From Selaginella moellendorffii (Eukaryota; Plantae; Lycopodiophyta), in the NCBI RefSeq assembly GCF_000143415.4, contig NW_003314353.1:1-64000 (forward strand): a DNA stretch of 64,000 nt, written 5' to 3'. Position 1 is the first letter of the stretch, and every line of letters begins with the position of its first letter. The notes under the pieces were generated by a model, which was not told the origin of the DNA, searched no databases, and saw only the letters and a list, made by a program, of their open reading frames with translations. Positions 778 to 44,854 of this stretch are shown one piece after another. The position numbers and the translations under genes were made by a program.

Positions 778-3210
778 ATGCTGCATTGCGCAGGATGTGG
801 AAGCTCCTGCTTCTTCCAATCCCAGCGACGCCCTCCAGGTATGCTGCAGGGCAGAGATTACAGGAGAATGCAGGCCAGAAAGATTGGCCGGGCAGGGTCT
901 AGCGCCATTGTTTTGGCATCCAAGAACAAATCCAGGAAGAAGAATGTGGAGGACGATGTCGCTGCATATACGACGGCTGCGTTGCCTCTGCTAGAGGAGT
1001 ATGCTGCCGGATACAGCGTGGCTGTGCTAGAGAAGAAGAAAGATTTGTCATCCAATCTGGGAGCAAAGGAAACTTTGCAGCGTGAGAAATCTTCTTCCAA
1101 GAAATCCTCGCTGGAAGAGTTTCTCAAAGGGAAAGTTCGACCATTGGACGAGGACGAAGAGAAAGAAGAGAAGGAAGACGAGAGAGTCGAAGTTTGGGAA
1201 GGCGACTTGGGAAGCCCAATGACCGCCGAGGAGGAGCGCAAGCTACTGGCTGAAGCTGAGAAGGAGCTCTCGGAGCTCAGGAAGATGCATGGAGAGCGTT
1301 CCATTTTTGAGAATCGCTCGAAGCTTGGGATCGAAGAGGACGACGATGACGACCGCGTGGAAGTTTGGAAGGGAGATAAGATGGAAGTCTGGAACGAAGA
1401 GGAGGACTCTTCCACAGATGTTTCTACGAGTGACAAGGAAGATCGAGCAGGAAACAAGAAAGGCGTGCCTGCTGTGATGAGGTGCTTCGATCGAGCAAAG
1501 ATTTACGTGAAAGCTGGGGATGGTGGCAATGGCGAGGTGGCCTTTCGAAGAGAAAAATACATCCCTCACGGTGGTCCATCGGGTGGTAATGGCGGACGAG
1601 GTGGAAACATATACATCGAGGTTGATCCATCGCTCAACTCGCTGCTGTGCTTCCGGAAGAGCGTGCATTTTCGTGCCGGACGCGGCAGCCACGGCCTTGG
1701 CAAGTCCCAGGATGGAGCTTTTGGAGACGACTGCGTCGTGAAAGTCCCGCCTGGAACAGTGGTGAGAGACGCGAAGAATTCAGAGACGCTACTCCTGGAG
1801 ATGACAAAAGCTGGACACAGGGAATTGCTGCTTCCGGGAGGCCGTGGTGGCCGTGGAAATGCTGCGTTCAAGTCGGCGAAGAACAAGACTCCTCAGCTGG
1901 CGGAGCGAGGCGAGCAAGGAGCCGAAATGTTGGTTCTCAATCCCCTCCCTTCAAGCGTGATGGTTTGTTCTTCAGTTTTTTTTTTTTTTTTGTTCTTCCT
2001 GTCTTGATTTGTTTCTCTCGACTTTCTCTGATCTTTTGAGTTGTGATCTTTCCAGGTGGGTCGATCTGGAGCTTAAACTTGTGGCAGACGTGGGAATTAT
2101 AGGTGTTCCAAACGCTGGAAAGAGCACGCTACTAAGTGCTATCAGTGCTGCTCGTCCCGCCATTGCTGCATATCCATTCACGACACTACTACCCAACCTT
2201 GGAGTGGTGTCGCTGGACTTCGATGCAACGATGGTTATAGCGGACTTGCCCGGGCTTCTCGAAGGTGCTCACGCTGGATACGGCCTCGGTCACGAGTTTT
2301 TACGCCACACTGAGCGCTGTCGAGTCCTGGTAAGCTTTTTCTTTTAAACTTTCCTGCGTGCTAAAAGTTTCTTTGGAAAACCAGATTCATGTTATAGACG
2401 GTACGAGTCCACAGCCAGAATTCGAGTACGATGCAGTACGACTGGAGCTGGAACTGTTTGATCCTCGCCTTTGCTCCAAACCATCCATTGTTGCTTTCAA
2501 CAAGATGGATGTCCCAGAGGCTGCTGAACGCTGGGAAAGTTTCCGGAAAGCTATGGAGTCTCGTGGAGTGGAGGTTCGTTCCATGAGCGCCGCAACCATG
2601 GAGGGCACGTCGCAAGTTGTACGTCATGCGTATAAGCTTCTACAGACAGTTCCAGTTGGTAAGTATGAAATACTACTTTTAACTGGACTGTGAAACTCTT
2701 TCTCTACTATCCTTGCAGAAGAACCCGTGTCGATCTCGAACGACGTAGCTTCGATGGTGAAAAAGGAGCGAAGTAGTCCCATTGGAGAATTTAAGGTGGA
2801 CGTCGATCCAGAATCAGACCTGTGGCACATTTACGGTGCTGGTGTGGAGCGTTTCACGCAAATGACTAACTGGGAGTAAGCTTACATCTTTTTTATTCCC
2901 ATTCTTTCGAGCATTACAGTTCTTACACGACTCGCAGGTATTTCGAGTCCTTGCAACGATTCGAGCGGGTCTTGGAATGCAGCGGCATAAATGCCGAGCT
3001 AAAGAGTAGAGGAATTCACGAAGGAGACAAAGTTGCGATCGGAGATGTACGTTAAATTCACACTCTTTGTTCTGTGCTATGAGCTCACTGTTTGTTTTTC
3101 TTTTTTCTTCGAACTTACAGATAGTTTTCACTTGGCACGATTCCAATGATATTTCAAATGTGGGGACTTGGAGACGCGGCCAGAGAGGCTCAAAAAGTTG
3201 GCCACACTGA
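778..3210 (+). CDS. OBGC: Plastid Obg/CgtA family GTPase (ObgC), ~6 exons (approx. 778-1928, 2056-2329, 2385-2658, 2719-2875, 2938-3046, 3121-3210)
   Basis: Obg fold '[16 protein letters not shown]...[14 protein letters not shown]', G1 '[11 protein letters not shown]', 'YPFTTL', 'IADLPGL', G4 'NKMD'. GT-AG introns of ~55-130 bp. Long N-terminal extension consistent with a transit peptide plus acidic region. TGA at 3208-3210. Confidence 0.93.
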
Positions 3211-3318
3211 TGCCTCGTTTGTAAAAAAGGTGATATTTTTATCTACAATCTTTCGCTTCTCATCTGTGCGTTCCAGAGAGACATAAAAGGCCTGGTGGTT
3301 TAGGTTTTTGCAGCGAGA

Positions 3319-5765
3319 ATGGCTACCAAAGCGGTGTTAACATTTGGAAGATACAAAGGCCAGCCTCTCGGTTCTCTTCCAGCGAACTATCTGCAATGGA
3401 TGACACAGGAGCTAGACAACCACTGGAATGGCTTGGCCAGGCAAGTCCTATCAGAAAGAAAAGAAGGAGAAAGCTCGAGCACGCAAGAAGGTGGCAGCAA
3501 CGTTTCTCCTCCGCAGAGCTCTCGCAAAGTCGGATCCATGGTTCTCACTTTCGGGAAGTACAAAGGCCAAGCGCTGGGCTCTCTCCCGGACGTGTACCTG
3601 GAATGGATGGCGAACAACATGCACACACACTGGGGGAGACACGCGAGAGAGTTTCTGGATAGCAAGCACGGTGGTGCTCGAGAAGTTCTCATCGCCCAAG
3701 AACAGGATGGATCGATCGCGCTGAAGAAGCAGATCCTGACTTGTCAAGAGAGGAGAGACCTCGAGGAAGCCAAGCGGATCCACGCACGGGTGAAAGCCAG
3801 CGCCTATCGCAACGACCGATACATCGCCAATCTTCTCATGGACATGTTTGGAGCTTGCGGGAGCGCGGACACGGCGCTAGAGATCTTTGACAAGATCCAG
3901 GCGCCCAACATCTTCTCCTGGAACATCATCCTCAAGGTTGTCACGCAGAAGAATGGATGCGATCCAGAGGCGTGGAAGATTTTCGAGAGGATCCCGGAGA
4001 AGGAGAAGAATGCCGTGTCGTGGAACATCATGCTCGCCGCGCTCGCGGCCGAGAAGGGGAATTTGCGCAAAGTGGAGGAGTTTTTCTACGAGAGGATGCC
4101 CGTCAAGGATGTGTTCTCCTGGACTACGCTGCTCAATGCCTACATAACAAATGGGCGGTTTGACAAGGCCAGGGAGATCTTTGCGAGCCTTGATGACGAG
4201 AATGTAAACGCCGCTACGTGGAACACGATAATAGAAGGATATGCCCAGACAGGGGATATGCTGCAAGCCAGAAAGATGTTCGATAGCATGCCCGAAAGAG
4301 CGTTGTGTCGTGGAATTTGATGATAGCAGCCTATGGAAAGATACATAATGTGGGAGAAGCAAGAAACCTGTTTGAAAAAGTGAAGGAGAAAAACCAGGTG
4401 ACTTGGAATGCGATGCTTGCTGTATATGCCCAGAACGGGCATCTGGAGGAAGAAAAAACCTTGTTTGCTGAGATGCCAAAGAAAGATGGCGCTTCGTGGA
4501 CGTGTTTGCTGCAAGCACACTGCCATGCAGGGACAACCCATGATTCGGAGGAGATCCTGCAGAAGATGCCGTTCGCAAAGACTATTGTGCACTGGACGAT
4601 GCTGCTGGATGCCCATGCAAAGGCCGGGAATCTCGATCGAGCGAGGGAAGTTTACGACCAAATGCCGGATCCGGATGCGATCGCGGCGAACGCCATGCTC
4701 GCCGCGTATGCACACAGAGGATACATGCACGAGGCAAATGCGCTGTTCGAGCAAGTTGGAGACAAAGTTGACGCCGCGACGAAGAACATCATGATCCTGG
4801 CGCATGGATCGGCCGGGAACTTGGAGGCATCCAAGCGACTATTCGACGAGATTATCGAGAGAGACCTCTACTCGTGGTCGTCGCTCATGCGGGCGTTCTC
4901 CTTGAGCAGCATGAACGAGGACGCGATTCATCTCTTTCGTTGCATGCTCGTCGAGGGCTTTGCTCCAAACGAAGTGGTTCTCCTCGTCTACGCGACCGCT
5001 GCGTGTGGGCGTGCGAGCTCGCTGGACGATTCCCGGAGCTTCTTTGCAAACATGCTTCCGGACTATGGAGTGTCTCCCGGCCTAGATCACTATGACTGCA
5101 TGGTTGGAGCTTTCGGAGCCGCGAAGAAGATGGAAGAAGCAAGAGAGCTCATTGATAGCATGCCTTTCGAAGCTGATGCTCGAGTGTGGATGACTCTACT
5201 CGCTTGCTGCCGGAGGCACTTGGACGCGGAGAATGGCAAGCTTTGCGCGGAGAGATTGTTTGTCTTGGATCCAGAGAACGTTTCACCGTACAAGATCCTT
5301 GCGGAGATCTACAGCCAAACCGGGAGAGAGAAAGACATTCCTGGATTGAAGAAGATGGTGAGAGACAAAGGTCTCCACAAGCTCGAGGCTGAGAGCCTGA
5401 TCCAGATCGATGGCATCACGCACAAGTTTCGAGTGGGAGACACTGCTCATCCGAGCATCAAGAAAGTTCGCAAGGAAGTCGCGAGGTTGGCGAAGCTGAT
5501 GGAGAAAGATCATGGGTATAAACACGAGAACTTGGGATGGAGTGAGTGTGGCGGTGGTGTTCACAGCGAGAAGCTTGCGATCGCGTACGCGCTGTGCGAG
5601 AAGAGCCGTGAGATCTCGCTCGTGAATAACTTGAGGATGTGCGGTGACTGCCATACTTCTGCGAAGATGATTTCCAGCGTGGTGAAGAGGAAGATCACGG
5701 TACGTGACACGCAGAGGCTGCATGGTTTTGAGAATGGTGTTTGCTCTTGCGCGGATACCTGGTAA
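3319..5765 (+). CDS. PLS-class PPR-E-DYW protein (ends ...CADTW) with two N-terminal DUF3820/ExoX-C-like repeats; single-base frameshift at ~4300 (pseudogene or sequence error)
   Basis: PPR motifs (NIFSWN, DVFSWT, AREIF), E domain 'MPFEADARVWMTLLACCRRH', DYW zinc ligands HSEKLA and CGDCH. ORFs 3319-4320 and 4305-5765 join as ERDVVSWN if one base is restored at 4300/4301. Confidence 0.88.
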
Positions 5766-5768
5766 GTT

Positions 5769-6848
5769 TTAGTCTATTGCGGTTCCAGAGGTGGGAAGAT
5801 CGCGATGGATCCATTCGTTAAATCCACCCTGGAGGTGGAAAACGTTTGTGAATCCTGCTTCCTGGAGTTCATATGCCGCTTTCAATGATCTGTAAGGAGA
5901 GTTTCTTTGTGAGAGTTTTTGACGCGAGATCGACGAGAGTACCTCGACTGACGTCCAAAGAAGCGCTCGGGATCCTTGAACTTCTTTGCTTTAGGCCCCG
6001 TTCTCTCGACGTACGTGAGGAGAGTTCCTCCAATGCTGCACAGGACGATTACTTTCTTGTTCTTGTCGCCGTTGACAGCGTCGAGAGCTTTCTCCACGAA
6101 TTCTGGGTTGCGCTCTGCCATGCAAGCTCTTTCAGTATTCCCTAGTTAGAAACGAGGGGAAAATTTAACCTGTGCCGGAGAAGTTCGTAAGCAAGGCAAA
6201 TCCCAGTCGCCTGCTCAACCAGACCAAAGCATCAGCAAAAAATCTTTGAGAAAAAAGGAAGTAGTAGGAAACCTGGCATTTGCTTTGAGATCGTTTCCTT
6301 GAATTTGTCGGAACAAGGGAGCGGACTTTGTTCCCTCGCCGTGCACCTGAGAAAGAAGAAAAAATGGATCTTGTGCCGAGAAATACGATGAATGATCCAA
6401 AAGAACCTTTTCGAAGGGTTGACACTCACGAACGTCAATAAGAACTGCGTCACCGCTCTTCATCATCTTGTATGCTTCATCGCAATCGAGGCTCACCAGA
6501 TTTCTCTCTGTTAGCTTTCGATGAATTTCTACAAAAGAAAGATATAGAACAAGAGAATCAGTCGGTCGAAATTTCATAGCACTCACCAATCCAAGCAGTG
6601 TACTTGAATGCGTCGTCAAACAGGGATCCAACGTAGCCATTCCGGGCGGCGACATCGGCCTTGAGCTTGTTGAGCTTGGCCTCCATCGTGTTTTGCGACA
6701 CGAATTTGTCGTAGAACCATCCCCGGCTGCTACTGACCTTGTCCGCCGCGGGAGCGCCATCGCGATCGCTTGCCCTAGCGCGCGTCGCAAAACCCTGATT
6801 GCGAGAAGGAAGAACTAGCGCTCGACTAGCAGAAAGCAATGGAGCCAT
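5769..6848 (-). CDS. Chloroplast rhodanese-like (STR14-like) protein, ~6 exons
   Basis: Spliced product includes 'DAVLIDVRE', 'LLTNFSGT-ERNPEFV', active-loop 'VIVLCSIGGT', 'GRQSRSLKAAYELQEAGFTNVFHLQGGFNEWIHRDLP'. TAA at 5771-5769. N-terminus is transit-peptide-like. Confidence 0.88.
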
Positions 6849-10299: not shown

Positions 10300-12240
10300 T
10301 CACTCCATTTTCACTGTCAACTTTTTAAGTTTGCACCATGTAATGACCAGTGTGATTATCACGACCAGCACAGTAAGAACAGAAATGACATAGAAACTGG
10401 CCCATAAGGGTTTTACCTCGTAGGTAGCCGTGGTAGTGAGCAACACCACGCTACCATCACTGAGGACCTGAGGTACAGTTTGCGCCTGCAAGATGTCCCG
10501 GTCCTTCTTTATGCTTTCCACGCTGCTATATGCTGTATATGCTAGTAAAACTGCATGGAATGTGAAGTTAGTGAATCAACTTGGCAAGAATAGGTTCACC
10601 ATACCTGCAAAACCGAGCACCAGGAGTGTTCTATAAAGAAACTTAAACCAAAAGCTGGGTTCCTGGCTTGAAAAAACTGATTTACTGCTCGACTGAGCAG
10701 CCTGGTCGTCAGTGTTGGAGTCCCCTACGGCGCCATCCCTGTTCCAGAAATTCTGAAACGACTCTTCGATATCTTGCAACTTGTGACTCGTTGCCAGGAA
10801 ACATGTTCCCAGGAAGGACACAATCGCTGACAAAATTCCGGTGTAGACTTGGTTTCTGTTGTTTGATCCGTCTTTCCACAGCTTGTTCTGCTTGAACTTG
10901 ACGTCTCTGAGCTGTAACATGGACTCAATCATCAGCTTGATCTCTGTGCTGATTGCAGTGTCCAGCTTGCTCACACATAGCTTGTCCTTAAACTCGAGCT
11001 GTCCCATAGGCAGATCTTCTAAACAGGGGGTACTGATCTTGTTCTCCCGGGGAGTGGGAGCCCAGAGGAATTGTCGCATCTTGTTCAGGTAGTACTCACC
11101 ATCTTCAATGCTCAGTACCAGCTGATTAGTACTGCACCTGTTCTGAACCTCCACACTCGATGGCACCGGTGACTGCTGCATCAATGCTTCGACACAGGAT
11201 GTTGTGTTCGCCATGGCTTGCAAGTTATCCGCTGTGACGGTGGTGAGGGCGTACCCGAAAGAGACATTCCCCTTAAAGGTTGCAATAAATGGTGCAGGCT
11301 TGTCAGATGAGATGTTGTGTGTGTTAAGAACAAGCCAATTGGTTCCACCGGCGTTCCAAGCCCAGTAAGACTTTGGCAAATTGCAAGGGGAACGATAGTC
11401 GAATGATCCCCAACTACTAGTGTCCATGTTCTTGGTGACCACGATACATACCTTGGTTGAGGAATTGGAACAGCCGCATTGGAGGGTAGGAAACCCAAGG
11501 TATACTGCGGCGTCGTTGCTGTAGTAAGATGGTGCAAACCCACACTTTGGCACATCCTTAGTGTTCGTAACATAGTAGTGGCTCGAGGTGTTGAGCTTCT
11601 GGTACTTGGTGAAGTCCGTCCTTGCATTGCTAGCGTAGTTGGAAAGGTAGAATCCTGCTGTGCTATGCTGCATGTTGTTCAGATCTGGCTCAATGCTGGG
11701 TGCAGTAGCAGCCCTGTAAGGGACACCAACAAGGAGCAGGCTGAGATCCACCTCGTTTTCCATCGAAAGGATGGGAGTAGTCCAGAGGCATGACCGATTG
11801 CTCTGGCTACCACCGATGGATAGGCACATGCGGATGCTGATACCCCAGTCCACTTGCATCCTCCATTGCCAGTTGCGCCGGTGCTGCTTCATGTGACCGC
11901 CTGCTATGTGGGGTTCGGCTGAGGCGTACAGCTTGTTGGCTCCCCCATCACTCGTCGAGTTGCTGATCACTCTCCATGCACTAGCTTGCTGGTAGGCAGA
12001 ATTGGCGAGCTCGATGTCGATGCCAGTTGTCGTGGAGAGGACGCTGGCGAGGGAAGAACGCAGAGACCATCTGTAGAACGGATCGAATTCGTTGACAAAG
12101 CTGTTCACTTCGGGGCATGCAAAACCCTCCCTGGACGGGAGGTCGAGGTAGAAATGATCGTCATCGGACCCATGACAGGAATGCGGGAGAAGTAGTAGTG
12201 CTGTTGCAGGCAGAAGCACTGAGAAGAGCATACTTGACAA
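10300..12240 (-). CDS. Orphan intronless protein: signal peptide, Cys-containing N-glycosylated ectodomain, ~3 TM helices; one in-frame TGA at 10578-10576
   Basis: The 554-aa ORF and the 73-aa ORF (10300-10521) are in the same frame, with 18 sense codons between them after the TGA. Hydrophobic segments: N-terminus, 'YTGILSAIVSFLGTCFLA', 'FLYRTLLVLGFAGMVNLFL', 'FYVISVLTVLVVIITLVITW'. Confidence 0.7.
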
Positions 12241-30254: not shown

Positions 30255-31747
30255 TTGAGCTTCCACCAGAGCTTCCTCGAGCTGCTTTGCTCGTCCCAGC
30301 ATGCCGATCATGCAGTGGTAGTGCTCAATGCCCGGATCTAATCCACACCTAGACATCATCTCCTGGAAAAACTTTTTGCCTTGCTCGATCATCCCAGCCC
30401 GGGTGCAAGTCGTGAGCACCGAGACATAAGTTACACCGTCCGGCTTGACACCCCCCTCACATCACTTGATCGCTGTCTCCCTGGCGGCTGTAGCCCGCGA
30501 TAAGTGAGCTCCAACTCACAGCATCCTTCCTCGAGACCGAGCTAAAAACCAGCTCCGCTTCGTCCATGCTCCCACAGCTGCTGTAGAAATCGACCAATGA
30601 AGAGATCACGGCTCCCTGGAACTGGAACCCCAAGCTCGTGATCTCTTCGTGAAGTATCCGGCCAAGCCTCAAGGCTACCGAGCTTCAACCAGCTTTGAGC
30701 GCGCAAACGAGCGTCCACACGTCTGGAGAACATCCCTCAAGTTGCATTAGGAAGAAAAAATGTAAAGCAGTTTCAGCCTGGCTGTTTTCAACGTACCCGA
30801 GCACCAATGCCGTCCAGAAGACTTGATTTGGCTGGAAAATGGTGCTAAACACTCCAAGAGCATCGCCCATGCTGCCATAAGCCGCGTACATTTGGATCAA
30901 GAAGCTGTGAAGAAAGATATCCAAGCGATGCATATGGTTAGTAATTTGCAAGGGCTGCGCGTGAAAAGCCATATCTCTTTCCAGAGACTTCAACTTGAGT
31001 ATCCTTCCATGATCTACTCCTCCCTCCCTCTTTGCTAGAGAAGTGATGGCCTGGAACACCGCAACAAAGGTTCTGGCATTTGCTCCACTGCTTTCTCACT
31101 GAAGCACCACCTCCCTCTGCCCATTCTCAACAAATCCCTGCATCAAAGAAGTCCATAGAACTACGTCACGCTTTGGAGCTCCATGAAAAACCTTCCACGC
31201 ATCCACCACGGTTCCACACCGAGCATACATTTCCACCAGGCTGCTAGCTACCAAAGCGTTTGTGTCGATTCCCCGAAGAGCCATTCCTCTCTCGACGGAA
31301 GAAAACTTCACGACGAGCTCTAGATCTTGTAAAACCTTCCCATTTTCCTTCTCTGCGAGGCCTTGAGCAATCCAATAAACGTGACAGAGCTCCCTTGCAA
31401 GCCTCGCGATTCCATGTCCAGGAAGAGCTGGAGCGTGCCATGCCCATTCTCGGCATAGCCCAGAATGAGAGAATTCCACGGGACGGGGTCGGGGCAATCC
31501 ATCCGGTCGAAAGCCCTGCATGCCTCGCCCATGCTGCCGCACTTGAGATTCACTAGGTCGCTCGTCACGAACGCATTGGAATCGAGGCCGCAGCTCTCCG
31601 CCTCGGCGTGGATTTGCTTACCCCGGGACCGAGAGCATTCCTTGAGCGACGCAAGGAATCTCCTCACCTCGCAATCGCTGGAGCGGGCGCGGCCAAGCTT
31701 GGAACGGAAAGCTCGAGGTCACGAAGAGGAAGAACGAAGGTTTCATT
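30255..31747 (-). pseudogene. PLS-class PPR-E pseudogene A, copy 1
   Basis: 'LKCGSMGEACRAFDRM', 'SLVEMYARCGTVVDAWKVF', 'DAVSWSSLIAGY', 'IEHYHCMIGMLGRA' in shifting frames. Confidence 0.88.
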
Positions 31748-31764
31748 TGATTCTTTGTTTCAAA

Positions 31765-31850
31765 GACAACCTTGACCGTTTATAAGACTATCTTGACCCC
31801 GTACTAACATAACTATTTAATTACATTTTTTATTGCCATATAAAAAGGCC
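31765..31850. promoter_or_regulatory. Bidirectional promoter between PPR-A and orphan ORF: two W-box-like TTGACC, TATA-like elements
   Basis: 'cTTGACCgtttataagactatcTTGACCc' and 'ccatataaaaagg' ~35 bp upstream of the ORF ATG. The TATA element is present in all four units. Confidence 0.45.
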
Positions 31851-31877
31851 TTTTAAGATTCACACAATCAGGGTTCA

Positions 31878-32570
31878 ATGGCAGCGGAGATCGAGAGTGT
31901 GGACAAGAAGGCTAACGCTGTGGCAGCGATGACTGTGATCAAAAAGGGAAGGAAGAGGCAGCGAGACAAAGAGGGACAAACTCATACAAAGGCTAGTGCT
32001 CCAAAGAGAAGGCATGAGCTCGAGGAGGAACCCCCTATGGTCCCAAAGAAAAATTTGAGCAGCAAGGTAGTATACAAGATTGATGGGTTAGTTATCACTT
32101 CCCACAGCGATTTTCATGACTTTTGGCCGCGATCAGCATCCAAGCTACCGGCACCGGACTACCTCCACTGCGCTGGAGCTCAAGAGCTTCACAGCCTCCT
32201 CACCCAAGAGCTCTGCAGGAGAGACCGTGATGATTGCGGCCCAAGGAACGCCCAGCTCTTGGTGGTGATTGGCGGGACGAGATGCTACATGATGAGGCGA
32301 CTCGAGGACTTGTGCCACTCGACTAGATGCGCTGGAGACAAGATCTGGTATGGAGTCCAGATTAAAGAGGGTGGAAGCTTGTGCACGCTGTTCAAGTATA
32401 TGTTTGATGGGAGGAGCACGAGCATGAGCCGGGACATGTCCAAGGAAATCCATGCCAAGGATTGCACAAACAAGACAAACAACATGATTCAAGAGATCCT
32501 CTCCCATGTCTCTGGGAACAAGAGCAACAATTACTTCTCTCCAATCCGTGTGGAGAGTGTCCACCATTGA
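31878..32570 (+). CDS. Orphan 230-aa protein, copy 1 (basic NLS-like N-terminus, Cys/His-rich core)
   Basis: Intact intronless ORF with ATG in 'caATGG' context and upstream TATA; KKGRKRQR and PKRR motifs. Confidence 0.6.
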   Translation: MAAEIESVDKKANAVAAMTVIKKGRKRQRDKEGQTHTKASAPKRRHELEEEPPMVPKKNLSSKVVYKIDGLVITSHSDFHDFWPRSASKLPAPDYLHCAGAQELHSLLTQELCRRDRDDCGPRNAQLLVVIGGTRCYMMRRLEDLCHSTRCAGDKIWYGVQIKEGGSLCTLFKYMFDGRSTSMSRDMSKEIHAKDCTNKTNNMIQEILSHVSGNKSNNYFSPIRVESVHH

Positions 32571-32888
32571 AATCACCCATGAGCTTTCACCCATGGTGAG
32601 CTTTCACTGTAAGAGAGTACATCAAAATAGAGAACAATTAAAAGTAGTGTGTTATTTCTCCCGATCGACATTGGCTTCGCTTCTTAAATTCCTGATGCAT
32701 TGCTTCACCAATATGGGCTGGTGATTCTATAACCGTGACTTCCACAAATTTCAGTCAGCAAAACAGCAAAACAAAAAGCTATCAGAACGATGGACGATCA
32801 AGGCAGAAAGAGATGTATGTATACATACCACTTGATTTTGTCCTGGGCCGTGCCGACTGAAATATTTAGTGGGCCATGTTAATGTAAT

Positions 32889-32938
32889 GGGCATTTGGTC
32901 TAGTGGCATGGTTCTCGCTTTGCAAGAGGTCCCGAGTG
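32889..32938 (+). pseudogene. tRNA-Pro-derived pseudogene, copy 1 (anticodon-arm deletion, truncated at the T-loop)
   Basis: GGGCATTTGGTCTAGTGGCATGGTTCTCGCTTTG-CAAGAGGTCCCGAGT matches plant tRNA-Pro GGGCATTTGGTCTAGTGGTATGATTCTCGCTT(N)GGGTGCGAGAGGTCCCGAGTTC. Confidence 0.85.
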
Positions 32939-32939
32939 T

Positions 32940-33850
32940 ATTTTCAACAAATGAGAAATTGCTCCGCGCTCGTCTCTCCATTTTTCTTCGGCATGGAAGC
33001 TTCGAAGAAGCCTTTTGCCTCGTGCAAGAGCATCACTGGGACGTGCTAAACAAGCTCTTTGCTTTCGCCATTTGCCCGTTTATGGCATACCCGTGAATTG
33101 TGACGCTTCGAGTGATGGTCTTATCGAACAGCTCTTGAACATATGTTGCCATGAGGGTGCTCCATGTCGGCATCTTGTAGCGGCATAGAATAAAAAATTT
33201 GTTTAGCCATTTTCAGATGCCCGGCCATGGGTTCCACATCACTATATCCTTGCTGCTGGCTTTGTTGGGTTAAGCTCCTTGCAGCGCTATATGCTTCAAT
33301 CATCACTTTCCAGGAGATGTCATCATGTCGCGGTGCGGCAATCCATCAAAGACTTGTTGGGCTTTATCTGTTCTGCATAAGATTTGAGCGTTGTGGTGGG
33401 GGAGACAAGATCAACTTCAGTCATGCGATGGAAGATTTGTTCTGTGCTGTGAGAATCCCCAGATCGGGCGTATGTTGACAGGAGACAATATCAGATTTCG
33501 TCCATATTGTCACCGTGTGTATAGGCAGCGAGCATTGCGCTCCAGGTGATGAGATCATGTTCCTCCATCGAATGAAAACCTAGCTTGGCTTTCTCCAAAT
33601 GCCCAGAACAAGCAAGTGCAGTAAGAATTGTGGTAGAAGAAATGAGTTTCCATTCTGGGATTGATTCATAAAGTGACTGTGCCTTGAGAAGAGTGTTGTT
33701 TGTGATATAAACAGCTATCATTGCATAAGTTGTTTTGCGGGATTTTGAACAAGAGATGTTCTGCTTCATGGAGATGAGCATTTGTGGCAAATGCTTACAA
33801 TATCATCACCCAGGAGAAGCAGTCCTTGGTGACAATTCTGCAAAAGATTT
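32940..33850 (-). pseudogene. PPR pseudogene B, copy 1 (SS-type motifs)
   Basis: 'SGHLEKAKLGFHSMEEHDLITWSAMLAAY', 'GHLKMAKQIFYSMP', 'GYAINGQMAKAKSLF'. Confidence 0.82.
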
Positions 33851-35029
33851 GGTAAGAATGAATCTGGTTAGATCATTATAAATAACTCCAACCAGAAGAA
33901 ATTTTGCTTCCTTTTGTGGTTAACATTCAGTTGCAATTCTTTTATGATTGAGTTTGATAGCTAAGTGAAAGATGGTTGTTTTATATTAGAAAAAACTATA
34001 TTAATAAAATTATTTTCCAGCACAATTGAAGTCTTTTCAGATTTTTTAGGTTTACAGTTTTTATAAAATAATTTGAACAAAAAATTATATCAATTTTAAT
34101 TTTTAAAATGATAAATTAAAATAAGTGTTCAAAATGTTTTTTAGGAAAAACATTATGATACATATGCATAATTGAACTGAAAAATGATTTTACTCTTTAA
34201 TTTTTTAAGTCATTTTTTTATCCAATTGGATAATTTTAATTTTTAATCTTCTAAATATCAAAAAAATTAAATATTTATTTAATTGATTATTATTTAGTGG
34301 TAGTTAGAGTTTATATAATATGAACATATAACTTCCAAATGCTAATTTAGAAATAAAAAGATTATTTTGAAGTTGTTCTTTTTTAATCTATTGCAACAAT
34401 TTTACTTTATAATCTCCTAAAATATCAAATGCAAATAAACTTTAATTTTTATTTAGTGGTTTTATAGTATTTATATAATATAAACATATAATTTTGTAAA
34501 CCCAAGCACTAATTTAGAAGGAAAAACATGATTTTAAACTTAGAATTGTAAAGTGTTTTAACTATATTTTTTTGTAAATTGTTTGCATTTGAAGTTTCTA
34601 ATTAAATTAACATTTTTTGTAAATTGAATTTAATAGGTAAGAAATGTCAATTTAACCATTCTATTTATTTTAGTTGATCAAAATAAATAATAAACCTTAA
34701 TTACAATAAGACATTATAATACAATTTGGCCAAGCATGAAAAGTATCTATGGATAATGCAGGCAGTGATTGTTCCTCCAAAGTACGAAGGGAATCAATCA
34801 AATCTTGCTGACCATGAGCCGTAACCATGTTTTGGCAATATTCCATGAAATACAGATTGAGCAATGGCTACTGCAGGCAATCTCAGCATGCCATCTGAGA
34901 AATGTAGCTCCAGGGATCACTTTAGAGACTTCTTGATTCAATGTAGCTTGCGGATGTCCATATATCAACCTTCCATATCATTGAGATCAATGTGAAGCCC
35001 GTGTAACGAGCTATGGAGAAATCTTTCAC

Positions 35030-37264
35030 AGGAGAGAGAGGATGTTGTCACAAGCAATCTTCTCCACTCTCTCATCCTTCCACTTGGAGCAAGCACCCAG
35101 CAAACTCGTCCAAGTGACCATTGTGGCTTCAAATGGCATAGCTTCCACCATCTCCACAGCTTCCTCGAGCTGCTGTGCCTGCATGCCAATCATTCTGTGG
35201 TAGTGCTCAATGCCTGGATCTAATCCTCACCTAGACATCATCTCCTGGAAAAACTTTTTGCCCTAGTCGATCATCCCAGCCTGGCTGCAAGTCGTGAGCA
35301 CTGAGACATAAGTTACACTGTCTGGCTTGACACCCTCGTCACATCACTTGATTGCTGTCTCCTTGGTGGCTGTAGCCTGCGATAAGTGAGCTCCAACTCA
35401 CAGAAAAGCACGTTAACAAACTGGTGTCCAATGAAACAGAATATTACTCTTCGTTAACATTAACGGAAGAGCAATTCTTACAAAATTGCAGACAAACTTG
35501 TAATAGTATTCCGCCAAACTGATAAAGGAATAAACATCTGATATAGACGAAGGCATATTCCCGGCAAATGTACTCTTCGTATGCTTCTCAAGACTTCATC
35601 AGTACTACTTTCTTTGGATTTACCTCAATTACGCCACCACTAACTATGTGTCTGAGAAAATTTATGCGCAATTGTCCAAAAGCACATTTACTTTCCTACA
35701 GAGATGTCAATGACTTCACCAGTTTTACTTTTTCTAAATTTACCTCAATTACACCACCACCAACTATATGTCCAAGAAACTTTACGTGCAATTGTCCAAA
35801 AGCACATTTACTTTCCTACAGAGATGTCAATGTCCTCAAATAAATAAACTCGTGTCATTTGCTCTGATACCAATTATAGCACACTTTATCTTTCTCCCCT
35901 TAAATCAACTGAAAAAAGGGCAATTGCTTAATGAGAGAGCCTTTAATGACTATTTTATCCCCATTTATCCCCCAAAGTTCTAAGGATCCATGGTGACAGT
36001 ATATCCAAATTTCATCCCATGATCATATGCGCTACAAAACACCAGCTCCACTTTCCATAGCTGCTATAGAAATCAACCAACCAACGAAGAGATCACAGCT
36101 CCCTGGAACTTGGAACTGGAACCCCAAGCTCGTGATCTCTTCATGAAGTATCCGGCCAAGCCTCAAGGCTACCGAGCTTTGAGAGCCCAAACGAGCGTCC
36201 ACACGTCTGGAGAACACCCCTCAAGTTGCATTAGCAAGAAAAAATGTAAAGCAGTTTCGGCCTGGCTGTTTTCAACATACCCGAGCACCAATGCCGTCCA
36301 GCAGACTTGATTTGGCTGGAAAATGGTGCTAAACACTCCAAGAGCATCGCCCAACAAGCCGCGTACATTTGAATCAAGAAGCTGTGAAGAAAGATATCCA
36401 AGAGATGCATATGGTTAGTAATTTGCAAGGGTTGTGCGTGAAAAGCCATATCTCTTTCCAGAGACTTCAGCTTGAGTATCCTTCCATGGATTGTATCTTC
36501 TCCTCATTCCGTCTTTGCTAGAGAAGTGATGGCCTGGAACACCGCAACAAAGGTTCTGGCATTTGCTCCACTGCTTTCTCGTTGAAGCACCACCTCGCTC
36601 TGCCCATTCTCTACAAATCCCTGCATCAAAGATGTCCATAGAACTACGTCATGCTTTGGAGCTCCATGAAAAACCTTCCACGCATCCACCACGCTTCCAC
36701 ACCGAGCATACATTCCACCAGGCTGCTAGCTACCAAAACGTTTGTGTCGATTCCCCTTGCAGCGGCCAGGGAGTGAAGAGCCATTCCTCTCTCGACAGAA
36801 GAAAACTTCACGACGAGCTCTAGATCTTGAAAAACCTTCCCATGTTCCTTCCCTGCGAGGCTCGCGCAGGCCTTGAGCAATCCAATAAACGTGACAGAAC
36901 TCCCTTGCAAGCCTCGCGATTCCATGTCCAGGAAGAGCTGGAGCGCAACCCCGCCATGCCCATTCTCGGCATAGCCCAGAATGAGAGAATTCCACGCGAC
37001 GGGGTCGGGGCAATCCATCCGGTCGAAAGCCCTGCGCACCTCGTCCATGCTGCCGCACTTGCCATAGAGATTCACCAGGTTGCTCGTCACGAACGCATTG
37101 GAATCGAGGCCGCAGCGCTCCGCCTCGGCGTGGATTTTCTTACCCCGGGATCGAGAGCATTCCTTGAGCGACGCAAGGAATCTCCTCACCTCGCAATCGC
37201 TGGAGCGAGGCCAAGCTTGGAACGGAAAGCTCGAGGTCGCGAAGAGGAAGAACGAAGGTTTCAT
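35030..37264 (-). pseudogene. PPR pseudogene A, copy 2, interrupted by an RT fragment
   Basis: Start 'MKPSFFLF', 'NLVNLYGKCGSMDEVRRAFDRM'; E domain 'MPFEATMVTWTSLLGAC' at 35040-35190. Confidence 0.88.
35404..36030 (-). mobile_element. Ty3/gypsy reverse-transcriptase fragment with an internal ~120 bp tandem duplication (35591-35832)
   Basis: Minus strand encodes 'KCAFGQLHVKFLGHIVGGGVIEVNLEKV' and 'LAEYYYKFVCNFVRIALPL...FHWTPVC', typical of the gypsy RT C-terminus and connection. Absent at the equivalent sites 30520 and 60620. Confidence 0.8.
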
Positions 37265-37395
37265 TTGATTCTTTGTTTCAAAGGGTCAAGATAGTCTTAT
37301 AAACGGTCAAGGTTGTCCGTACTAAAATAACTATTTAATTACATTTTTTATTGCCATATAAAAAGGCCTTTTAAGATTCACACAATCAGGGTTCA

Positions 37396-38088
37396 ATGGC
37401 AGCGGAGATCGAGAGTGTGGACAAGAAGGCTAACGCTGTGGCAGCGATGACTGTGATCAAAAAGGGAAGGAAGAGGCAGCGAGACAAAGAGGGACAAACT
37501 CATACAAAGGCTAGTGCTCCAAAGAGAAGGCATGAGCTCGAGGAGGAACCCCCTATGGTCCCAAAGAAAAATTTGAGCAGCAAGGCAGTATACAAGATTG
37601 ATGGGTTAGTTATCACTTCCCACAGCGATTTTCATGACTTTTGGCCGCGATCAGCATCCAAGCTACCGGCACCGGACTACCTCCACTGCGCTGGAGCTCA
37701 AGAGCTTCACAGCCTCCTCACCCAAGAGCTCTGCAGGAGAGACCGTGATGATTGCGGCCCGAGGAACGCCCAGCTCTTGGTGGTGATTGGCGGGACGAGA
37801 TGCCACATGATGAGGCGACTCGAGGACTTGTGCCACTCGACTAGATGCGCTGGAGACAAGATCTGGTATGGAGTCCAGATTAAAGAGGGTGGAAGCTTGT
37901 GCACGCTGTTCAAGTATATGTTTGATGGGAGGAGCACGAGCATGAGCCGGGACATGTCCAAGGAAATCCATGCCAAGGATTGCACAAACAAGACAAACAA
38001 CATGATTCAAGAGATCCTCTCCCATGTCTCTGGGAACAAGAGCAACAGTTACTTCTCTCCAATCCGTGTGGAGAGCGTCCACCATTGA
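37396..38088 (+). CDS. Orphan 230-aa protein, copy 2
   Basis: Intact; 3 amino-acid differences from copy 1, no indels. Confidence 0.6.
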   Translation: MAAEIESVDKKANAVAAMTVIKKGRKRQRDKEGQTHTKASAPKRRHELEEEPPMVPKKNLSSKAVYKIDGLVITSHSDFHDFWPRSASKLPAPDYLHCAGAQELHSLLTQELCRRDRDDCGPRNAQLLVVIGGTRCHMMRRLEDLCHSTRCAGDKIWYGVQIKEGGSLCTLFKYMFDGRSTSMSRDMSKEIHAKDCTNKTNNMIQEILSHVSGNKSNSYFSPIRVESVHH

Positions 38089-38329
38089 TTGTAAGAATCA
38101 CCCATGATTAAAAGCTTTCACTTTAAGAGAGTACATCAAAATGGAGAACAATTAAAAGTAGCTTGTTATTCCTCCCGATCGACATTGGTTTCGCTTCTTA
38201 AATTCCTGGTGCATTGCTTCACCAATATGGGCTGGCGATTCTATAACCGTGACTTCCACAAATTTCAGTCTCTTGATTTTGTCCTGGGCCGTGCCAACTG
38301 AAATATTTAGTGGGCCATGTTAATGTAAT

Positions 38330-38379
38330 GGGCATTTGGTCTAGTGGCATGGTTCTCGCTTTGCAAGAGGTCCCGAGTG
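38330..38379 (+). pseudogene. tRNA-Pro-derived pseudogene, copy 2
   Basis: Same sequence as 32889-32938. Confidence 0.85.
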
Positions 38380-39300
38380 TATTTTCAACAAATGAGAAAT
38401 TGCTCCGCGCTCGTCTCTCCATCTTTCTTCGGTATGGAAACTTCGAAGAAGCCTTTTGCCTCGTGCAAGAGCATCACTCGCGCGACCTGGAATCGAATCA
38501 GGGACGTTCTAAACAAGCTCTTTGCTTTCGCCATTTGCCCGTTTATGGCATACCCGTGAATTGTGACGCTTCGAGTGATGGTCTTATCGAACAGCTCTTG
38601 AACATATGTTGCCATGAGGGTGCTCCACGTCGGCATCTTGTAGCGGCATAGAATAAAAAATTTGTTTAGCCATTTTCAGATGCCCGGCCTTGGGTTCCAC
38701 ATCACTATATCTTTGCTGCTGGCTTTGTTGGGTTAAGCTCCTTGCAGCGCTATATGCTTCAATCATCACTTTCCAGGAGATGTCATCATGTCGCGGCGCG
38801 GCAATCCATCAAAGACTTGTTGGGCTTGATCTGTTCTGCATAAGATTTGAGCATTGTGGTGGGGGAGACAAGATCAACTTCAGTCATGCTATGGAAGATT
38901 TGTTCTGTGCTGTGAGAATCCCCAGATCGGGCGAGGAGACAATATCAGAGTTCGTCCATATTGTCACTATGTGTATAGGCAGCGAGCATTGCGTTCCAGG
39001 TGATGAGATCACGTTCCTCCATCGAATGAAAACCTAGCTTGGCTTTCTTCAAATGCCCAGAACAAGCAAGTGCAGTAAGAATTGTGGTAGAAGAAATGAG
39101 TTTCCATTCTGGGATTGATTCATAAAGTGACTGTGCCTTGAGAAGAGCGTTGTTTGTGATATAACCAGCTATCATTGCATAAGTTGTTTTGCGGGATTTT
39201 GAACAAGAGATGTTCTGCTTCATGGAGATGAGCATTTGTGGCAAATGCTTACAATATCATCACCCAGGAGAAGCAGTCCTTGGTGACAATTCTGCAAAAG
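38380..39300 (-). pseudogene. PPR pseudogene B, copy 2
   Basis: 'FHSMEERDLITWNAMLAAY'; co-linear with 32940-33850. Confidence 0.82.
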
Positions 39301-40479
39301 ATTTGGTAAGAATGAATCTGGTTAGATCATTATAAATAACTCCAACCAGAAGAAATTTTGCTTCCTTTTGTGGTTAACATTCAGTTGCAATTCTTTTATG
39401 ATTGATTTTGATAGCTAAGTGAAAGATGGTTGTTTTATATTAGAAAAAAATATATTAATAAAATTATTTTCCAGCACAATTGAAGTCTTTTCAGATTTTT
39501 TAGGTTTACAGTTTTTATAAAATAATTTGAACAAAAACTTATATCAATTTTAATTTTTAAAATGATAAATTAAAATAAGTGTTCAAAATTTTTTTTAGGA
39601 AAAACATTATGATACATATGCATAATTGAACTGAAAAATGATTTTACTCTTTAATTTTTTAAGTCATTTTTTTATCCAATTGGATAATTTTACTTTTTAA
39701 TCTTCTAAAATATCAAACAAATTAAATATTTATTTATTTGATTATTATTTAGTGGTAGTTAGAGTTTATATAATATGAACATATAACTTCCAAATGCTAA
39801 TTTAGAAATAAATTTTTTTTTAAGTTGATCTTTTTTTATCTATTGCAACAATTTTACTTTATAATCTCCTAAAATATCATATGCAAATAAACTTTAATTT
39901 TTATTTAGTGGTTTTATAGTATTTATATAATATAAACATATAATTTTGTAAACCTAAGCACTAATTTAGAAGGAAAAACATGATTTTAAACTTAGAATTG
40001 TAAAGTGTTTTAACTATATTTTTTTGTAAATTGTTTGCATTTGAAGTTTCTAATTAAATTAACATTTTTTGTAAATTGAATTTAATAAGTAAGAAATGTC
40101 AATTTAACCATTCTTTTTATTTTAGTTGATCAAAATAAATAATAAACCTTAATTACAATAAGTCATTATAATACAATTTGGCCAAGCATGAAAAGTATCC
40201 ATGGATAATGCAGGCAGTGATTGTTCCTCCAAAGTACGAAGGGAATCAGTCGAATCTTGCTGACCATGAGCCGTGACCATGTTTTGGCGATATTCCATGA
40301 AATACAGATTGAGCAATGGCTACTGCAGGCAATCTCAGCATGCCATCTGAGAAATGCAGCTCCAGGGATCGCTTTAGAGACTTCTTGATTCAATGTAGCT
40401 TGCAGATGTCCATATATCAACCTTCCATATCATTGAGATCAACATGAAGCCCGTGTAACGAGCTATGGAGAAATCTTTC

Positions 40480-40920
40480 ACAGGAGAGAGAGAGGATGTT
40501 GTCACAAGCAATCTTCTCCACTCTCTCATCCTTCCACTTGGAGCAAGCACCCAGCAAACTCGTCCAAGTGACCATTGTGGCTTCAAACGGCATAGCTTCC
40601 ACCATCTCCACAGCTTCCTCGAGCTGCTGTGCCTGCATGCCAATCATTTTGTGGTAGTGCTCAATACCTGGATCTAATCCACACCTAGACGTCATCTCCT
40701 GGAAAACTTTTTGCCTTGGTCGATCATCCCAGCCTGGCTGCAAGTCGTGAGCACTGAGACATAAGTTATACTGTCCGGCTTGACACCCTCATCACATCAC
40801 TCGATCGCTGTCTCTTTGGTGGCTGTAGCCTGCGATAAGTGAGCTCCAACTCACAGAAAAGCACGTTGACAAACTGGTGTCCAATGAAACAGAATATTAC
40901 TCTTCGTTACATTAATGGAA
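40480..40920 (-). pseudogene. 3' part of PPR-A copy 3 plus start of the RT fragment (continues at 55151)
   Basis: 'MPFEATMVTWTSLLGACSKW'; co-linear with 35030-35468. Confidence 0.82.
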
Positions 40921-41685: not shown

Positions 41686-42386
41686 AGGGTGAAAGCTCAA
41701 AGCGTTCATCTCCAAGAGCCTGGGGGGTTTGGTGAGCTCCAAAAGTATAGGTCACGGTGTTCCGAAATGTTATCCCAAAGGTCACAGTGTTCCGAAATGT
41801 TATCCCAAAGGCCTAGACTGTGGAAAGGAAGAGGAGTAGTCCTCTAGTGTAGTGACCAAGGATACAGTCGTGCGGTGAGGAAATCCCAGAGGACCGTGGG
41901 ACTTAGTGGTTGGGCCTGTGGGCCTTGATCCAGTGGCAGTGTTGGCGAACACGGCCAAGGATAGAAAGGGACTTAGTGGGGACCGGAAAGGGGATATTGG
42001 GGAAGGTTATTCCCCATGTCCATGGGCATCCTAAGGATGTAAAGGAGTGGATATAAGGTGATCACTCATGGATGGATGGCCTAGTCTTTGAGAGACGGGA
42101 CTGTGATGTAGGTGGTGTTAGACCACCGATGTGACCAAGATGAATGGGCATGGCCTTAGCGTAACGGGCTGATATGTTGGTGGTACCTTGGGGTGTCGAT
42201 CATGGGATCGGACATGTGGAGCACTTGGACCAAGTGCAAAGGTTGAGTGGCGGAGATGCCATTCTCGGGGCTAGCAAGCCTAAGTCTGAAATAGGACTTA
42301 TGGAGGTTGTGAGTGAGACTCCTCCAAGTGGTCGAAGGTGTGGTTAAGTGACTAAAGTAGAATGGAAAAATTAGTCGCTTACAATT

Positions 42387-42398
42387 TGGTATCGGAGC
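42387..42398 (+). promoter_or_regulatory. Primer-binding site complementary to the 3' end of initiator tRNA-Met
   Basis: TGGTATCGGAGC, 3 nt after the LTR-terminal ACA. Confidence 0.85.
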
Positions 42399-44854
42399 TG
42401 TTCCTTAGTCCGACTCTTATTGGTGGCGAAGTATATCACCACTTGTATTGGAATTGGAAGGTCCTAGGTATGGACCTATCCTTAAGGAGGAGTATGTCGA
42501 GAGGATATGGCTCTCCACTCAAGTTCATATGTGAACTTGGGCGTGATATGGTGGATAGAAAAGGGCCAATAATGGAATGAGTTTGGGATTTTGGGAACAG
42601 TATAAAGGTTTCCTCAGCGAGATGAGGATGTGATCCAAATGAGCATTTGACTTAGCAAATTGGCTAATGTAGTTGTGGTAAACTACAGTTGGGATCACGG
42701 GAAAGATAGAGACTCCAAAGCAATAAAGGAGTCACAAGATTATCCTCATATAGTTGAGGTTGGTGCTCATGAATGTGAGACCAGAAGTAATGATTGCGGG
42801 ATGTCAAATATAGAAAAGGACACAAGTTCTTGAAATGGTAGCTGGAGCTATTTGTAATAAATGCTGAAACAACCCAAGGAATTGGGGGTGTACTCAAAGG
42901 ATGAGTTGGTATTCTCATCACATGGACAAGTGGTCCTAAGAGGCAAAAGGTTTCCCCAAGAGAACAAATCAAGTGTCGAAGTAACACTTGCAGATATAGT
43001 CCTTGTGAGTAGGACTTGAATACAAGAAGTTGTATTCTAGTGAGCTGGCACCTCAAAGATAGGACCTCATGGGTCATCAGATGACAAAGTCCAAAAAGTT
43101 GAATGACTCAAATAGAGTCAAGGAATAATCCTAAAGGGATTGGTTGAAACATTTGGACTAAGGTGTATGGTGCCTTATGAGGTATGGAGAGGATCATAAG
43201 ATTCAAGTATGAGAACAGTAGGTATCTTATTGATAGCAAAATGTGCTATACTAAAGTTGTGGGAAAGATGTTCCCAAAAGAAAACAACTTTGGCATAGAG
43301 TTGTGTGTGAACACTATAGTGCAGTGCTAACTGATAGTTGGCATGAAAAACGATTGCTTTGGTCTTGGCAAAGACCTAGACACAAGTAAAAAGTGTTATA
43401 GAAGTAGGCTCATGGAGCCGTTAGTGTGAAGACACTAAATGTGCCAAAGTGAGATACCTTGAGGTTATGTTCATGGGAACCCCTTGCCAAGGGAATGGCA
43501 TAGCCTAAGCTGGAAGGCATGTGGTTGGAGTATGGTGACCCAAATAATGATGGAAGTGTGAAAACACCAAACAATGAGTTGTAGGACTTGACAACTATGG
43601 GACAACTAAGCAAAAGGTGCAAAATAATTAGTTAAATGGGTAGAAGGTAGCTACTCAAGACTTCTTAAAGGCATGAGGAAGTTAGATATACCCTTACGGA
43701 GGATAAATTGTTTATGTTGCGATATAGTAAATCAATATCGAAAAAGGAAATGCTCATTGTCAAGGAAACCATCATTGGGACACCAAAACACTCTGGAATA
43801 CCAGGAGGTGGTGTTTTGTGTCGCGAGGGCAATAAATAAGGCCCAAGGGACTAAATCTCTAGCGAATGATGGATGGAAGATGCCATCCAAACGTCCAAGG
43901 TTGTGGAGACGGGAGGAATCCGTCTACCTGATTTGGACAAAGCCAAAAATGGGATTTTGGCAAGGCTAGTGATGGGCATATGGAGGCCCATAAGTAGCAA
44001 CGGTAATCCCGGTGTGTGGGATTATAAGGTGAGCATGCCCAATTGAGGAACCACTCCCTAAGCTATCGGGTAAGTTCATCCCTATGAATACTTGCTAAGG
44101 CATGGTAAAATGTGCAAAGCTATCCTCCTAGTTTGGAGGAGAATAACCAAAGGAAACATATAGGGCCAAAAGGCAAGTAGTATTGGGATGGAACTGAACT
44201 ATAGAAATCGAAGGGCATAATCAATGGTGGTTATGCAAGTTAGGAGTGGAGAATCAAAAGGATGCTCAAGGAGTTGTTATTAGCAACCGCAGTGCCATGG
44301 AGAGTCTAAAATGTGGAATTATTCATGTTGAACCATATGGTGAGCAAGGAGCTTGCAAAGGAGTGGCCTTAGCAAGTTAAGGAACAGAGTTCTTTGAAGG
44401 TTCCCGAAGACAATTCTAGGTAAATAAGTACTTAGAAAGCCAAGTGTAAATGGTTCTTAGAGTGCGCGAAATCAGAGTGGCGCAACAGAAGCGTGGTCTT
44501 GAAGCTGGCTATGAGGCAAGGCTATCAAGGTTGGGGAAGTAGTTCCCGAGTGTTCAAAGAGAGGGCTTTGAACGAAAGTCGATGGTTAAAGACTTTCATG
44601 TTTATGCATGAACCATGTTACGGTGGCTGGATGATTTGCTAGATGAGATTAGCAAGTCGGGGGAACAAATACTCTAGTCAAAGGTGCTGCCTTCAAAAGG
44701 GGTGGCCAATGGGGCCGAGCATGGAAGAGTCCATGCACGATCACCGACTTGTCAAGTGAGAGGACTTGGCAGTGCGGAGGAACTAGGTTCCTAAGTTGTG
44801 ATCTATAGCACGCTTTAAGTACATGTTGGTGCACCCACGTGGGGAGTCACGCTA

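Follow-up and report, generated by a model that had tools for sequence, protein, structure and literature searches.

Background

PPR-DYW proteins, in which a tract of pentatricopeptide repeats (PPRs) is followed by a DYW deaminase domain, carry out cytidine-to-uridine (C-to-U) editing in plant organelles, and programmable RNA base editors are built on them. Characterised factors with the PPR-E-DYW architecture include PPR56 and PPR65 of Physcomitrium, and the PPR-DYW proteins of early land plants are thought to act alone, without the MORF helper proteins of seed plants. PPR tracts joined to a domain that stems from DNA or RNA metabolism are known from the PPR-SMR proteins and from PRORP, which combines PPRs with an NYN nuclease. 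The small DUF3820 module, in turn, is found elsewhere with RNase_T/DnaQ exonucleases, superfamily 2 helicases (Helicase_C/ResIII), AAA_30, Sak, Rad52, HD and giant-virus RNase H domains, and is also carried by an 82-member cluster of streptophyte proteins. Here we analyse a gene of the lycophyte Selaginella moellendorffii that unites these two worlds, namely a PPR-E-DYW gene headed by two tandem copies of DUF3820, located at positions 3319 to 5765 of a 64,000-nucleotide stretch of DNA (GCF_000143415.4, NW_003314353.1, positions 1 to 64,000, forward strand; hereafter the window, to which all coordinates refer unless a locus is named).

We propose that an intronless nuclear gene, of which this segment is the copy in one haplotype, encodes a PLS-class PPR-E-DYW protein with an N-terminal DUF3820 didomain, for which functional roles can be suggested from its relatives. 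To this statement as a whole we assign a probability of about 0.6; the anatomy is near certain and the proposed role of the didomain much less so.

Results and discussion

Architecture of the gene and identification of the N-terminal didomain

According to the open reading frame (ORF) listing and its translation, the fusion gene begins with the ATG at 3319-3321 on the plus strand and is distributed over two frames. ORF1 encodes 333 amino acids (aa) from this ATG to a TGA at 4318-4320, and ORF2, in another frame, extends from about 4296 to 5765 (486 aa counted from its first GTG); the frameshift that the original prediction had read in this allele is thus present in the sequence. The annotated products of the gene in the window are likewise two, of 333 and 430 aa. 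Its principal features are:

3334 to 3450, plus strand: DUF3820/QSregVF_b copy 1, aa 6-44, FGRYKG...YLQW (Pfam, internal repeat, AlphaFold2)
3451 to 3540, plus strand: linker, aa 45-74, rich in Ser, Glu, Gly and Pro (predicted local distance difference test score, pLDDT, about 60 over residues 51-70 in AlphaFold2)
3541 to 3657, plus strand: DUF3820/QSregVF_b copy 2, aa 75-113, FGKYKG...YLEW (Pfam, ExoX-like_C, internal repeat, AlphaFold2)
3715 to 5171, plus strand: PPR array of about 15 repeats, with the frameshift inside it (Pfam PPR, PPR_2, PPR_1)
4295 to 4297, plus strand: frameshift site, AAA (sole gap in the global alignment of alleles)
4318 to 4320, plus strand: premature TGA closing ORF1 (ORF translation)
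5172 to 5372, plus strand: E1/E2 motifs (Pfam E_motif, 35.5 bits against a gathering cut-off of 27.3)
5373 to 5765, plus strand: DYW deaminase domain and stop codon (Pfam DYW_deaminase)
5562 to 5570, plus strand: HSE of the deaminase signature
5640 to 5654, plus strand: CGDCH of the deaminase signature

The segment from 3319 to 3678 encodes two repeats of about 45 aa, which are identical at 24 of 45 ungapped positions (BLASTP of one half against the other, E 6e-18), in agreement with the duplication of about 40 aa originally predicted for residues 6-44 and 75-113. The attribution of these repeats to the DUF3820/QSregVF_b/ExoX C-terminal module was likewise upheld by profile searches: the Pfam model QSregVF_b (PF12843, formerly DUF3820; gathering cut-off 22 bits) matched aa 1-120 in two stretches with 54.5 bits (E 1.1e-14) and the whole 333-aa ORF with 50.8 bits, placing both within the family. 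The related, overlapping model ExoX-like_C (PF20600; cut-off 26.5 bits) scored 29.8 bits on the 120-aa piece and 23.7 bits, below its cut-off, on the 333-aa ORF. Among the NCBIfam models, both copies map to the C-terminal ends of DNA polymerase III epsilon and ExoX. A loose regular expression run over the six-frame translation of the 64 kb recovered the two didomain sites and no third.

Structure prediction with AlphaFold2 from a 49-sequence alignment (A1) gave a mean pLDDT of 87, exceeding 90 in each copy. Each copy is predicted to fold as a short beta-hairpin, whose G-K-x-K-G loop is basic, with two helices after it. In copy 1 the helix extends to about residue 52, and the linker beyond this point is predicted to be flexible. 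Searches of the PDB by sequence, with both the single protein and a profile, returned no informative match to the didomain, and the best hit of a wide structural search was an uninformative one to a helical piece of myosin VI (Z 5.8). The E. coli ExoX crystal was obtained without the C-terminal module, and residues 1-167 of that enzyme "retained activity" (PMC3753628); therefore the module is dispensable for catalysis in ExoX.

Relatives of the didomain and its probable source

An exhaustive phmmer search of 1.84 billion representative sequences with aa 1-120 as query, a single sequence where a profile would reach further, matched 146 proteins. The best of these reached only 35% identity and were metagenomic DUF3820 proteins that themselves carry two copies. 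When 20 of the longer matches were scanned with Pfam, three proved to be PPR fusions. In word-indexed protein searches, region 1-120 of the intact allele described below found no match, and region 1-110 of a second Selaginella fusion protein (P0015, see below) found only itself; these nulls carry little information, as the searches had few words to work with and the intact allele does not represent its cluster.

Considered domain by domain, the best matches of both copies were plant single-domain proteins (from Dipteronia, Tripterygium, Impatiens and Ananas), together with the other fusions. The plant single-domain matches showed 43-48% identity with BLOSUM62 scores of 96-119, and the metagenomic proteins scored somewhat lower. 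Since the best per-domain scores go to plant proteins, the probable source of the module is the single-domain DUF3820 family of the plant itself, rather than a recent bacterial transfer. The original prediction had termed the repeats "bacterial-type", a label in need of qualification, since the individual copies are best matched by single-domain proteins of plants.

The PPR array and the deaminase domain

Downstream of the didomain, Pfam detects PPRs (147 and 73 bits), the E motif and the DYW deaminase, which places the protein among the PPR-E-DYW factors. When its repeat boundaries are set by eye in the intact allele, the array resolves into a long run of consecutive S-type repeats of 31-33 aa, followed by P2-L2-S2, E1/E2 and the DYW domain. 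A PLS-type PPR array and a DYW domain had been anticipated here; the PPR, E and DYW elements with HSE and CGDCH are present as expected, but the array is mostly made of consecutive S-type repeats and not of P-L-S triplets. The DYW_deaminase model (PF14432) matches with 85.2 bits (E 2.7e-24) against a cut-off of 24 bits, over profile positions 25-93 only. HSE, CGDCH and H-x5-CSCADTW occupy invariant columns of our alignment A3 and together supply the zinc-binding and catalytic signature.

Within the DYW domain (5391-5570), seven aa are deleted directly before HSE, and the protein terminates in DTW. The decayed paralogue described below (locus L005, 8299-8685) displays the same deletion, the same VHSE context, and GA in place of the PG pair. 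As the deletion, the VHSE context and the loss of PG are common to both, they are lineage features rather than fresh damage, and the domain is, as judged from its sequence, a lineage-specific DYW variant for which competence in C-to-U editing is plausible, not assured. The FGxxKG...YLxW motif of the didomain occurred in none of the 120 nearest PPR-DYW matches.

An intact allele and purifying selection

The 333- and 430-aa products of the window fall in one 90% cluster with XP_024538554.1/XP_024538555.1, an 815-aa protein encoded on the S. moellendorffii scaffold GL377600.1 and named "pentatricopeptide repeat-containing protein At4g02750" in RefSeq. This protein is 97-98% identical to the translations of both window frames, and its first 120 aa are identical to those of ORF1. 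The window and GL377600.1 are colinear over 6.8 kb at 97.9% identity and possess the same order of genes, namely an Obg GTPase, the PPR gene, a rhodanese on the minus strand and a GDSL lipase; by all these comparisons they are two haplotypes of the draft assembly.

In a global alignment of 3319-5765 with the corresponding part of the GL377600.1 locus (L001, 6001-8448), the only length difference within the gene is AAAA in GL377600.1 against AAA at 4295-4297 of the window, which places the frameshift at codons 326/327, the junction of two S repeats. The frame is interrupted in the window allele and runs uninterrupted through 815 codons in that of GL377600.1; given the single gap between the alleles, the fusion exists as one continuous 815-codon frame. 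We then compared nonsynonymous and synonymous differences between the alleles by the Nei-Gojobori method, with the deletion marked by a gap character in the codon counts, and obtained the following values for the ratio of their proportions (pN/pS):

Whole gene: 15 nonsynonymous, 20 synonymous; pN/pS 0.20
Didomain: 0 nonsynonymous, 3 synonymous; pN/pS 0
DYW domain: 2 nonsynonymous, 9 synonymous; pN/pS 0.06
Upstream of the frameshift: 6 nonsynonymous, 6 synonymous; pN/pS 0.27
Downstream of the frameshift: 9 nonsynonymous, 14 synonymous; pN/pS 0.18

Under neutrality, 15 or fewer nonsynonymous changes among 35 would be expected with a binomial P of 4e-6. These counts indicate purifying selection on the gene, including the didomain, over most of the period that has passed since the two haplotypes diverged, and the deletion, if real, is by the same token recent. 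In that event, the window allele would yield at most a truncated protein comprising the didomain and six PPRs without a deaminase. The original prediction had allowed that the fusion might exist only in a frameshifted allele evolving neutrally; the intact allele and the pN/pS of 0.20 speak against both parts of that scenario.

Recurrence of the fusion

The same fusion also occurs beyond the two alleles of this gene, as had been thought worth seeking: another pair of intact genes carries it, as do a decayed paralogue and a protein from a different organism. The second S. moellendorffii gene is represented by intact copies in both haplotypes (P0015, XP_024516766.1, and P0147, XP_024536929.1; 751 aa), with two FGKHKG copies starting from residue 8-10, followed by PPR-E-DYW. 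A 783-aa protein from another organism (P0055), recovered from three Logan runs (SRR32617110, SRR32617137 and SRR32617138), has about 50 N-terminal residues, a degenerate copy 1, a good copy 2 and a canonical PLS-DYW region. A further S. moellendorffii RefSeq model of 314 aa (P0024) is a chimaera in which the end of a DYW gene is spliced to copy 2 of a paralogue of the window gene. At the locus behind it (L005, 6446-8688) lies the decayed paralogue: its frame is split into at least four ORFs, and what is left of copy 1 lacks the FGxYKG part. The possibility that the fusion is an artefact of ORF calling was rejected, as it is continuous in three intact genes.

With regard to one versus several fusion events, the PPR-DYW part of the window gene is about 30-32% identical to fusion and non-fusion Selaginella proteins alike, and in a per-copy score matrix copy 1 does not pair with copy 1 across paralogues.

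Full-text literature searches, whose coverage leaves out most subscription journals, found no paper on this fusion, and it is absent from the main text of both a 2011 survey of deaminases (PMC3239186) and a 2026 kingdom-wide survey of editing factors (PMC13386178). The architecture is hence new to the literature searched, with an intact copy already present as an unremarked RefSeq entry.

The N-terminus and the question of targeting

The region immediately upstream of the gene contains the following features:

3211 to 3318, plus strand: spacer of 108 bp between the Obg stop and the PPR ATG (the Obg coding sequence, CDS, ends at 3210)
3301 to 3303, plus strand: in-frame TAG nearest upstream of the ATG, within the spacer
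3305 to 3313, plus strand: splice-acceptor-like TTTTTGCAG, after the in-frame TAG and about 5-6 nt before the ATG

The distance of 108 bp from the ATG to the preceding stop is as originally stated. The acceptor-like motif is the same in both haplotypes, which are identical over the 94 nt from the last allelic difference at 3225 to the ATG; given this motif 5' of the ATG, an upstream exon is conceivable but unlikely. The claim that the didomain stands in place of a transit peptide is, on sequence grounds, not established. In its favour are the predicted folded domain from residue 5 onwards and the mere 108 bp that separate the Obg stop from the ATG. Weighing against it, the first 30 aa resemble a presequence in composition, with three basic residues and none that is acidic, which falls within the interquartile range for canonical N-termini (n=114 PPR-DYW proteins from a full-length similarity search). 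Moreover, in two non-fusion S. moellendorffii PPR-DYW models (P0238 and P0267) the first PPR-like repeat begins, as annotated, about 15-25 residues after the Met, so that short N-termini are nothing exceptional in this genome; indeed, very short heads seem common among its PPR-DYW models. The roughly 50 residues that precede the domains in P0055 and the acceptor-like motif also count against the claim.

Each of the three fusion loci follows a gene on the same strand at a distance of about 100-165 bp. At the other two, this upstream gene is another PPR-DYW gene (L006 3894-4001/L007 about 3880-3985; L005 6282-6446). Two of the loci have RefSeq models in which the upstream gene is joined to the fusion gene, namely P0024 and P0147, the gene range of the latter starting 984 bp 5' of the ATG; such joins may reflect read-through transcription or tandem insertion. 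In the window, the intronless PPR gene is tightly flanked on both sides (3208-3321 and 5763-5775; L001 5892-6001 and 8448-8452): its ATG follows the same-strand Obg stop, and an annotated rhodanese CDS on the opposite strand ends 4 bp beyond its stop, so that the untranslated regions must overlap.

Functional proposal and evidence that weighs against it

The repeat tract would bind an organellar transcript and the DYW domain would deaminate cytidine to uridine, such that the C-terminal part of the protein would act as a site-specific C-to-U editing factor. By analogy with its other occurrences, the didomain is likely to be a retained accessory module, probably tethering the enzyme to a protein partner or a nucleic acid; we infer such a binding role because the module accompanies DnaQ exonucleases, helicases, annealing proteins and RNase H. 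A more specific version would have the didomain as a recruitment module, which docks the editor to an organellar nucleoid or single-stranded DNA-binding protein (SSB) platform, or to the partner of the plant's single-domain DUF3820 protein, or alternatively directs it to a non-organellar substrate. This idea stems from the partner enzymes elsewhere, which gather on single-stranded nucleic acid and SSB-type hubs, and we regard it as speculative and rather improbable.

Several observations weigh against our overall proposal. The module is without a solved structure or a known biochemical role, the ExoX crystal having left it out, and a Foldseek search of the PDB by fold gave no informative match to the didomain. 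The margin by which plant relatives outscore metagenomic ones is small. The PG box, normally conserved in DYW domains, is degenerate, with EA for PG and SLIQ for SWIE; it is this degeneracy, along with the restriction of the Pfam DYW match to positions 25-93, that leaves editing competence not assured. The P0015/P0147 pair has a pN/pS of only 0.58 overall and 0.37 in the didomain, and with the window allele frameshifted and one paralogue decayed, part of the family is being lost.

Alternative explanations

The last of these points could be taken further, with the whole gene viewed as one of the very many Selaginella PPR genes, now in decay, and its didomain as an evolutionary accident devoid of function. 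The frameshifted window allele, the L005 paralogue in at least four ORFs that has lost the FGxYKG of copy 1, and the degenerate PG box are all in keeping with decay. However, a pN/pS of 0.20 (P 4e-6) with no amino-acid change in the didomain, an intact allele alongside a second intact gene pair, and the retention of both copies with high predicted foldedness are hard to reconcile with it, making wholesale decay improbable. The frameshift itself admits a different reading, namely that AAA arose from a wrong consensus call in a short run of A in the Sanger draft, in which case both alleles encode 815 aa. The only indel in 2.4 kb is AAAA versus AAA, and constraint is not relaxed downstream of the frameshift (pN/pS 0.18 against 0.27 upstream), although a very recent true deletion would give the same pattern. 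Furthermore, the public annotation holds two separate products on the window scaffold, and the 9 gap openings in the 6.8-kb haplotype alignment indicate that indel differences between the haplotypes do exist. A consensus error is thus a distinct possibility, which we nonetheless hold to be somewhat doubtful.

Two further alternatives concern the destination of the protein. A conventional targeting peptide might come from an upstream exon, or through transcription that runs on from the adjacent gene, leaving the didomain internal to the precursor. The acceptor-like TTTTTGCAG, which ends at 3313, past the in-frame TAG, and is shared by both haplotypes, is compatible with such an exon, as are the same-strand genes lying about 100-165 bp 5' of all three fusion loci, the RefSeq joins at P0024 and P0147 and the approximately 50 residues ahead of the domains in P0055. 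Yet the space upstream is occupied by the Obg CDS, the P0015 locus has no AG in the final 30 nt before its ATG, and the annotated products of two independent gene pairs begin 5-10 residues before the first domain; hence we consider this arrangement unlikely. The converse suggestion, made in the original prediction, is that the enzyme is a non-organellar deaminase, cytosolic or nuclear, or one imported piggy-back on a partner. It could draw on the folded domain predicted from residue 5 (pLDDT 93) and on the four acidic residues among the first 30 of the paralogue P0015, but the corresponding residues of the window gene (0 acidic, 3 basic) are within the canonical PPR-DYW range and equally short heads occur in non-fusion Selaginella PPR-DYW models. 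To our knowledge, every PPR-DYW editing factor characterised in plants works in an organelle, and a non-organellar role appears very unlikely indeed. We accordingly retain the view of a nuclear-encoded PPR-E-DYW protein headed by a DUF3820 didomain as the best account of this locus.

Other features of the window

Elsewhere in the window, a repeat unit of about 5 kb is present three times (30572-35468, 35707-40920 and 55247-59768), with two copies adjacent and 92-96% identity among them. Each unit contains a 230-aa ORF that is about 99% identical among the copies and has no Pfam match. An inverted pair at 41778-45686 and 49574-53491 is 85% identical. Three long Pfam-negative ORFs, of 554 aa (10579-12240, minus strand), 355 aa (46894-47958, minus strand) and 349 aa (48289-49335, plus strand), probably belong to repeat elements.

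Conclusions and comparison with known systems

A conserved module of the replication and recombination type on editing enzymes would indicate an unrecognised layer of recruitment or regulation. If the docking version of our proposal were true, it would imply a lycophyte helper system in place of the MORF proteins of seed plants. The fusion would also provide a eukaryotic setting in which the uncharacterised DUF3820/ExoX C-terminal module becomes tractable. The value of the window copy itself is smaller, as it is a broken allele and an intact copy is already in RefSeq.

The didomain shares with the DUF3820/PF12843 and PF20600 modules of bacteria, phages and giant viruses the signature F-G-K-x-K-G...P..YL.W, and its metagenomic relatives display tandem copies, just as in the Selaginella gene. 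However, whereas the module of bacteria, phages and giant viruses usually comes after an RNase_T, helicase, Sak/Rad52, HD or RNase H domain, in this land plant it stands in front of a repeat tract that binds RNA and of a cytidine deaminase. The uncharacterised plant single-domain DUF3820 proteins (KAK3219072.1 of Dipteronia, KAF5739209.1 of Tripterygium and XP_047333883.1 of Impatiens) have the same W-x-x-L-A-x-x-V-L helix as copy 1; unlike the fusion, they carry one domain between a Ser-rich head and a charged tail, without PPR or DYW.

With the PPR-E-DYW editing factors, the gene has in common the S-rich tract, P2-L2-S2, E1/E2, a DYW domain with HxE, CxDCH and CSC..W, and its intronless nuclear character; the nearest full-length matches are At4g02750-, At1g56690- and At1g09410-like proteins at 30-35% identity. 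It differs from them in its two N-terminal DUF3820 modules, the replacement of PG by EA, the deletion of seven aa before HSE and the DTW end. Finally, like the PPR-SMR proteins and PRORP, it appends a module from nucleic-acid metabolism to a PPR tract; but in those proteins the module is C-terminal and catalytic, whereas that of Selaginella is N-terminal, small and duplicated.

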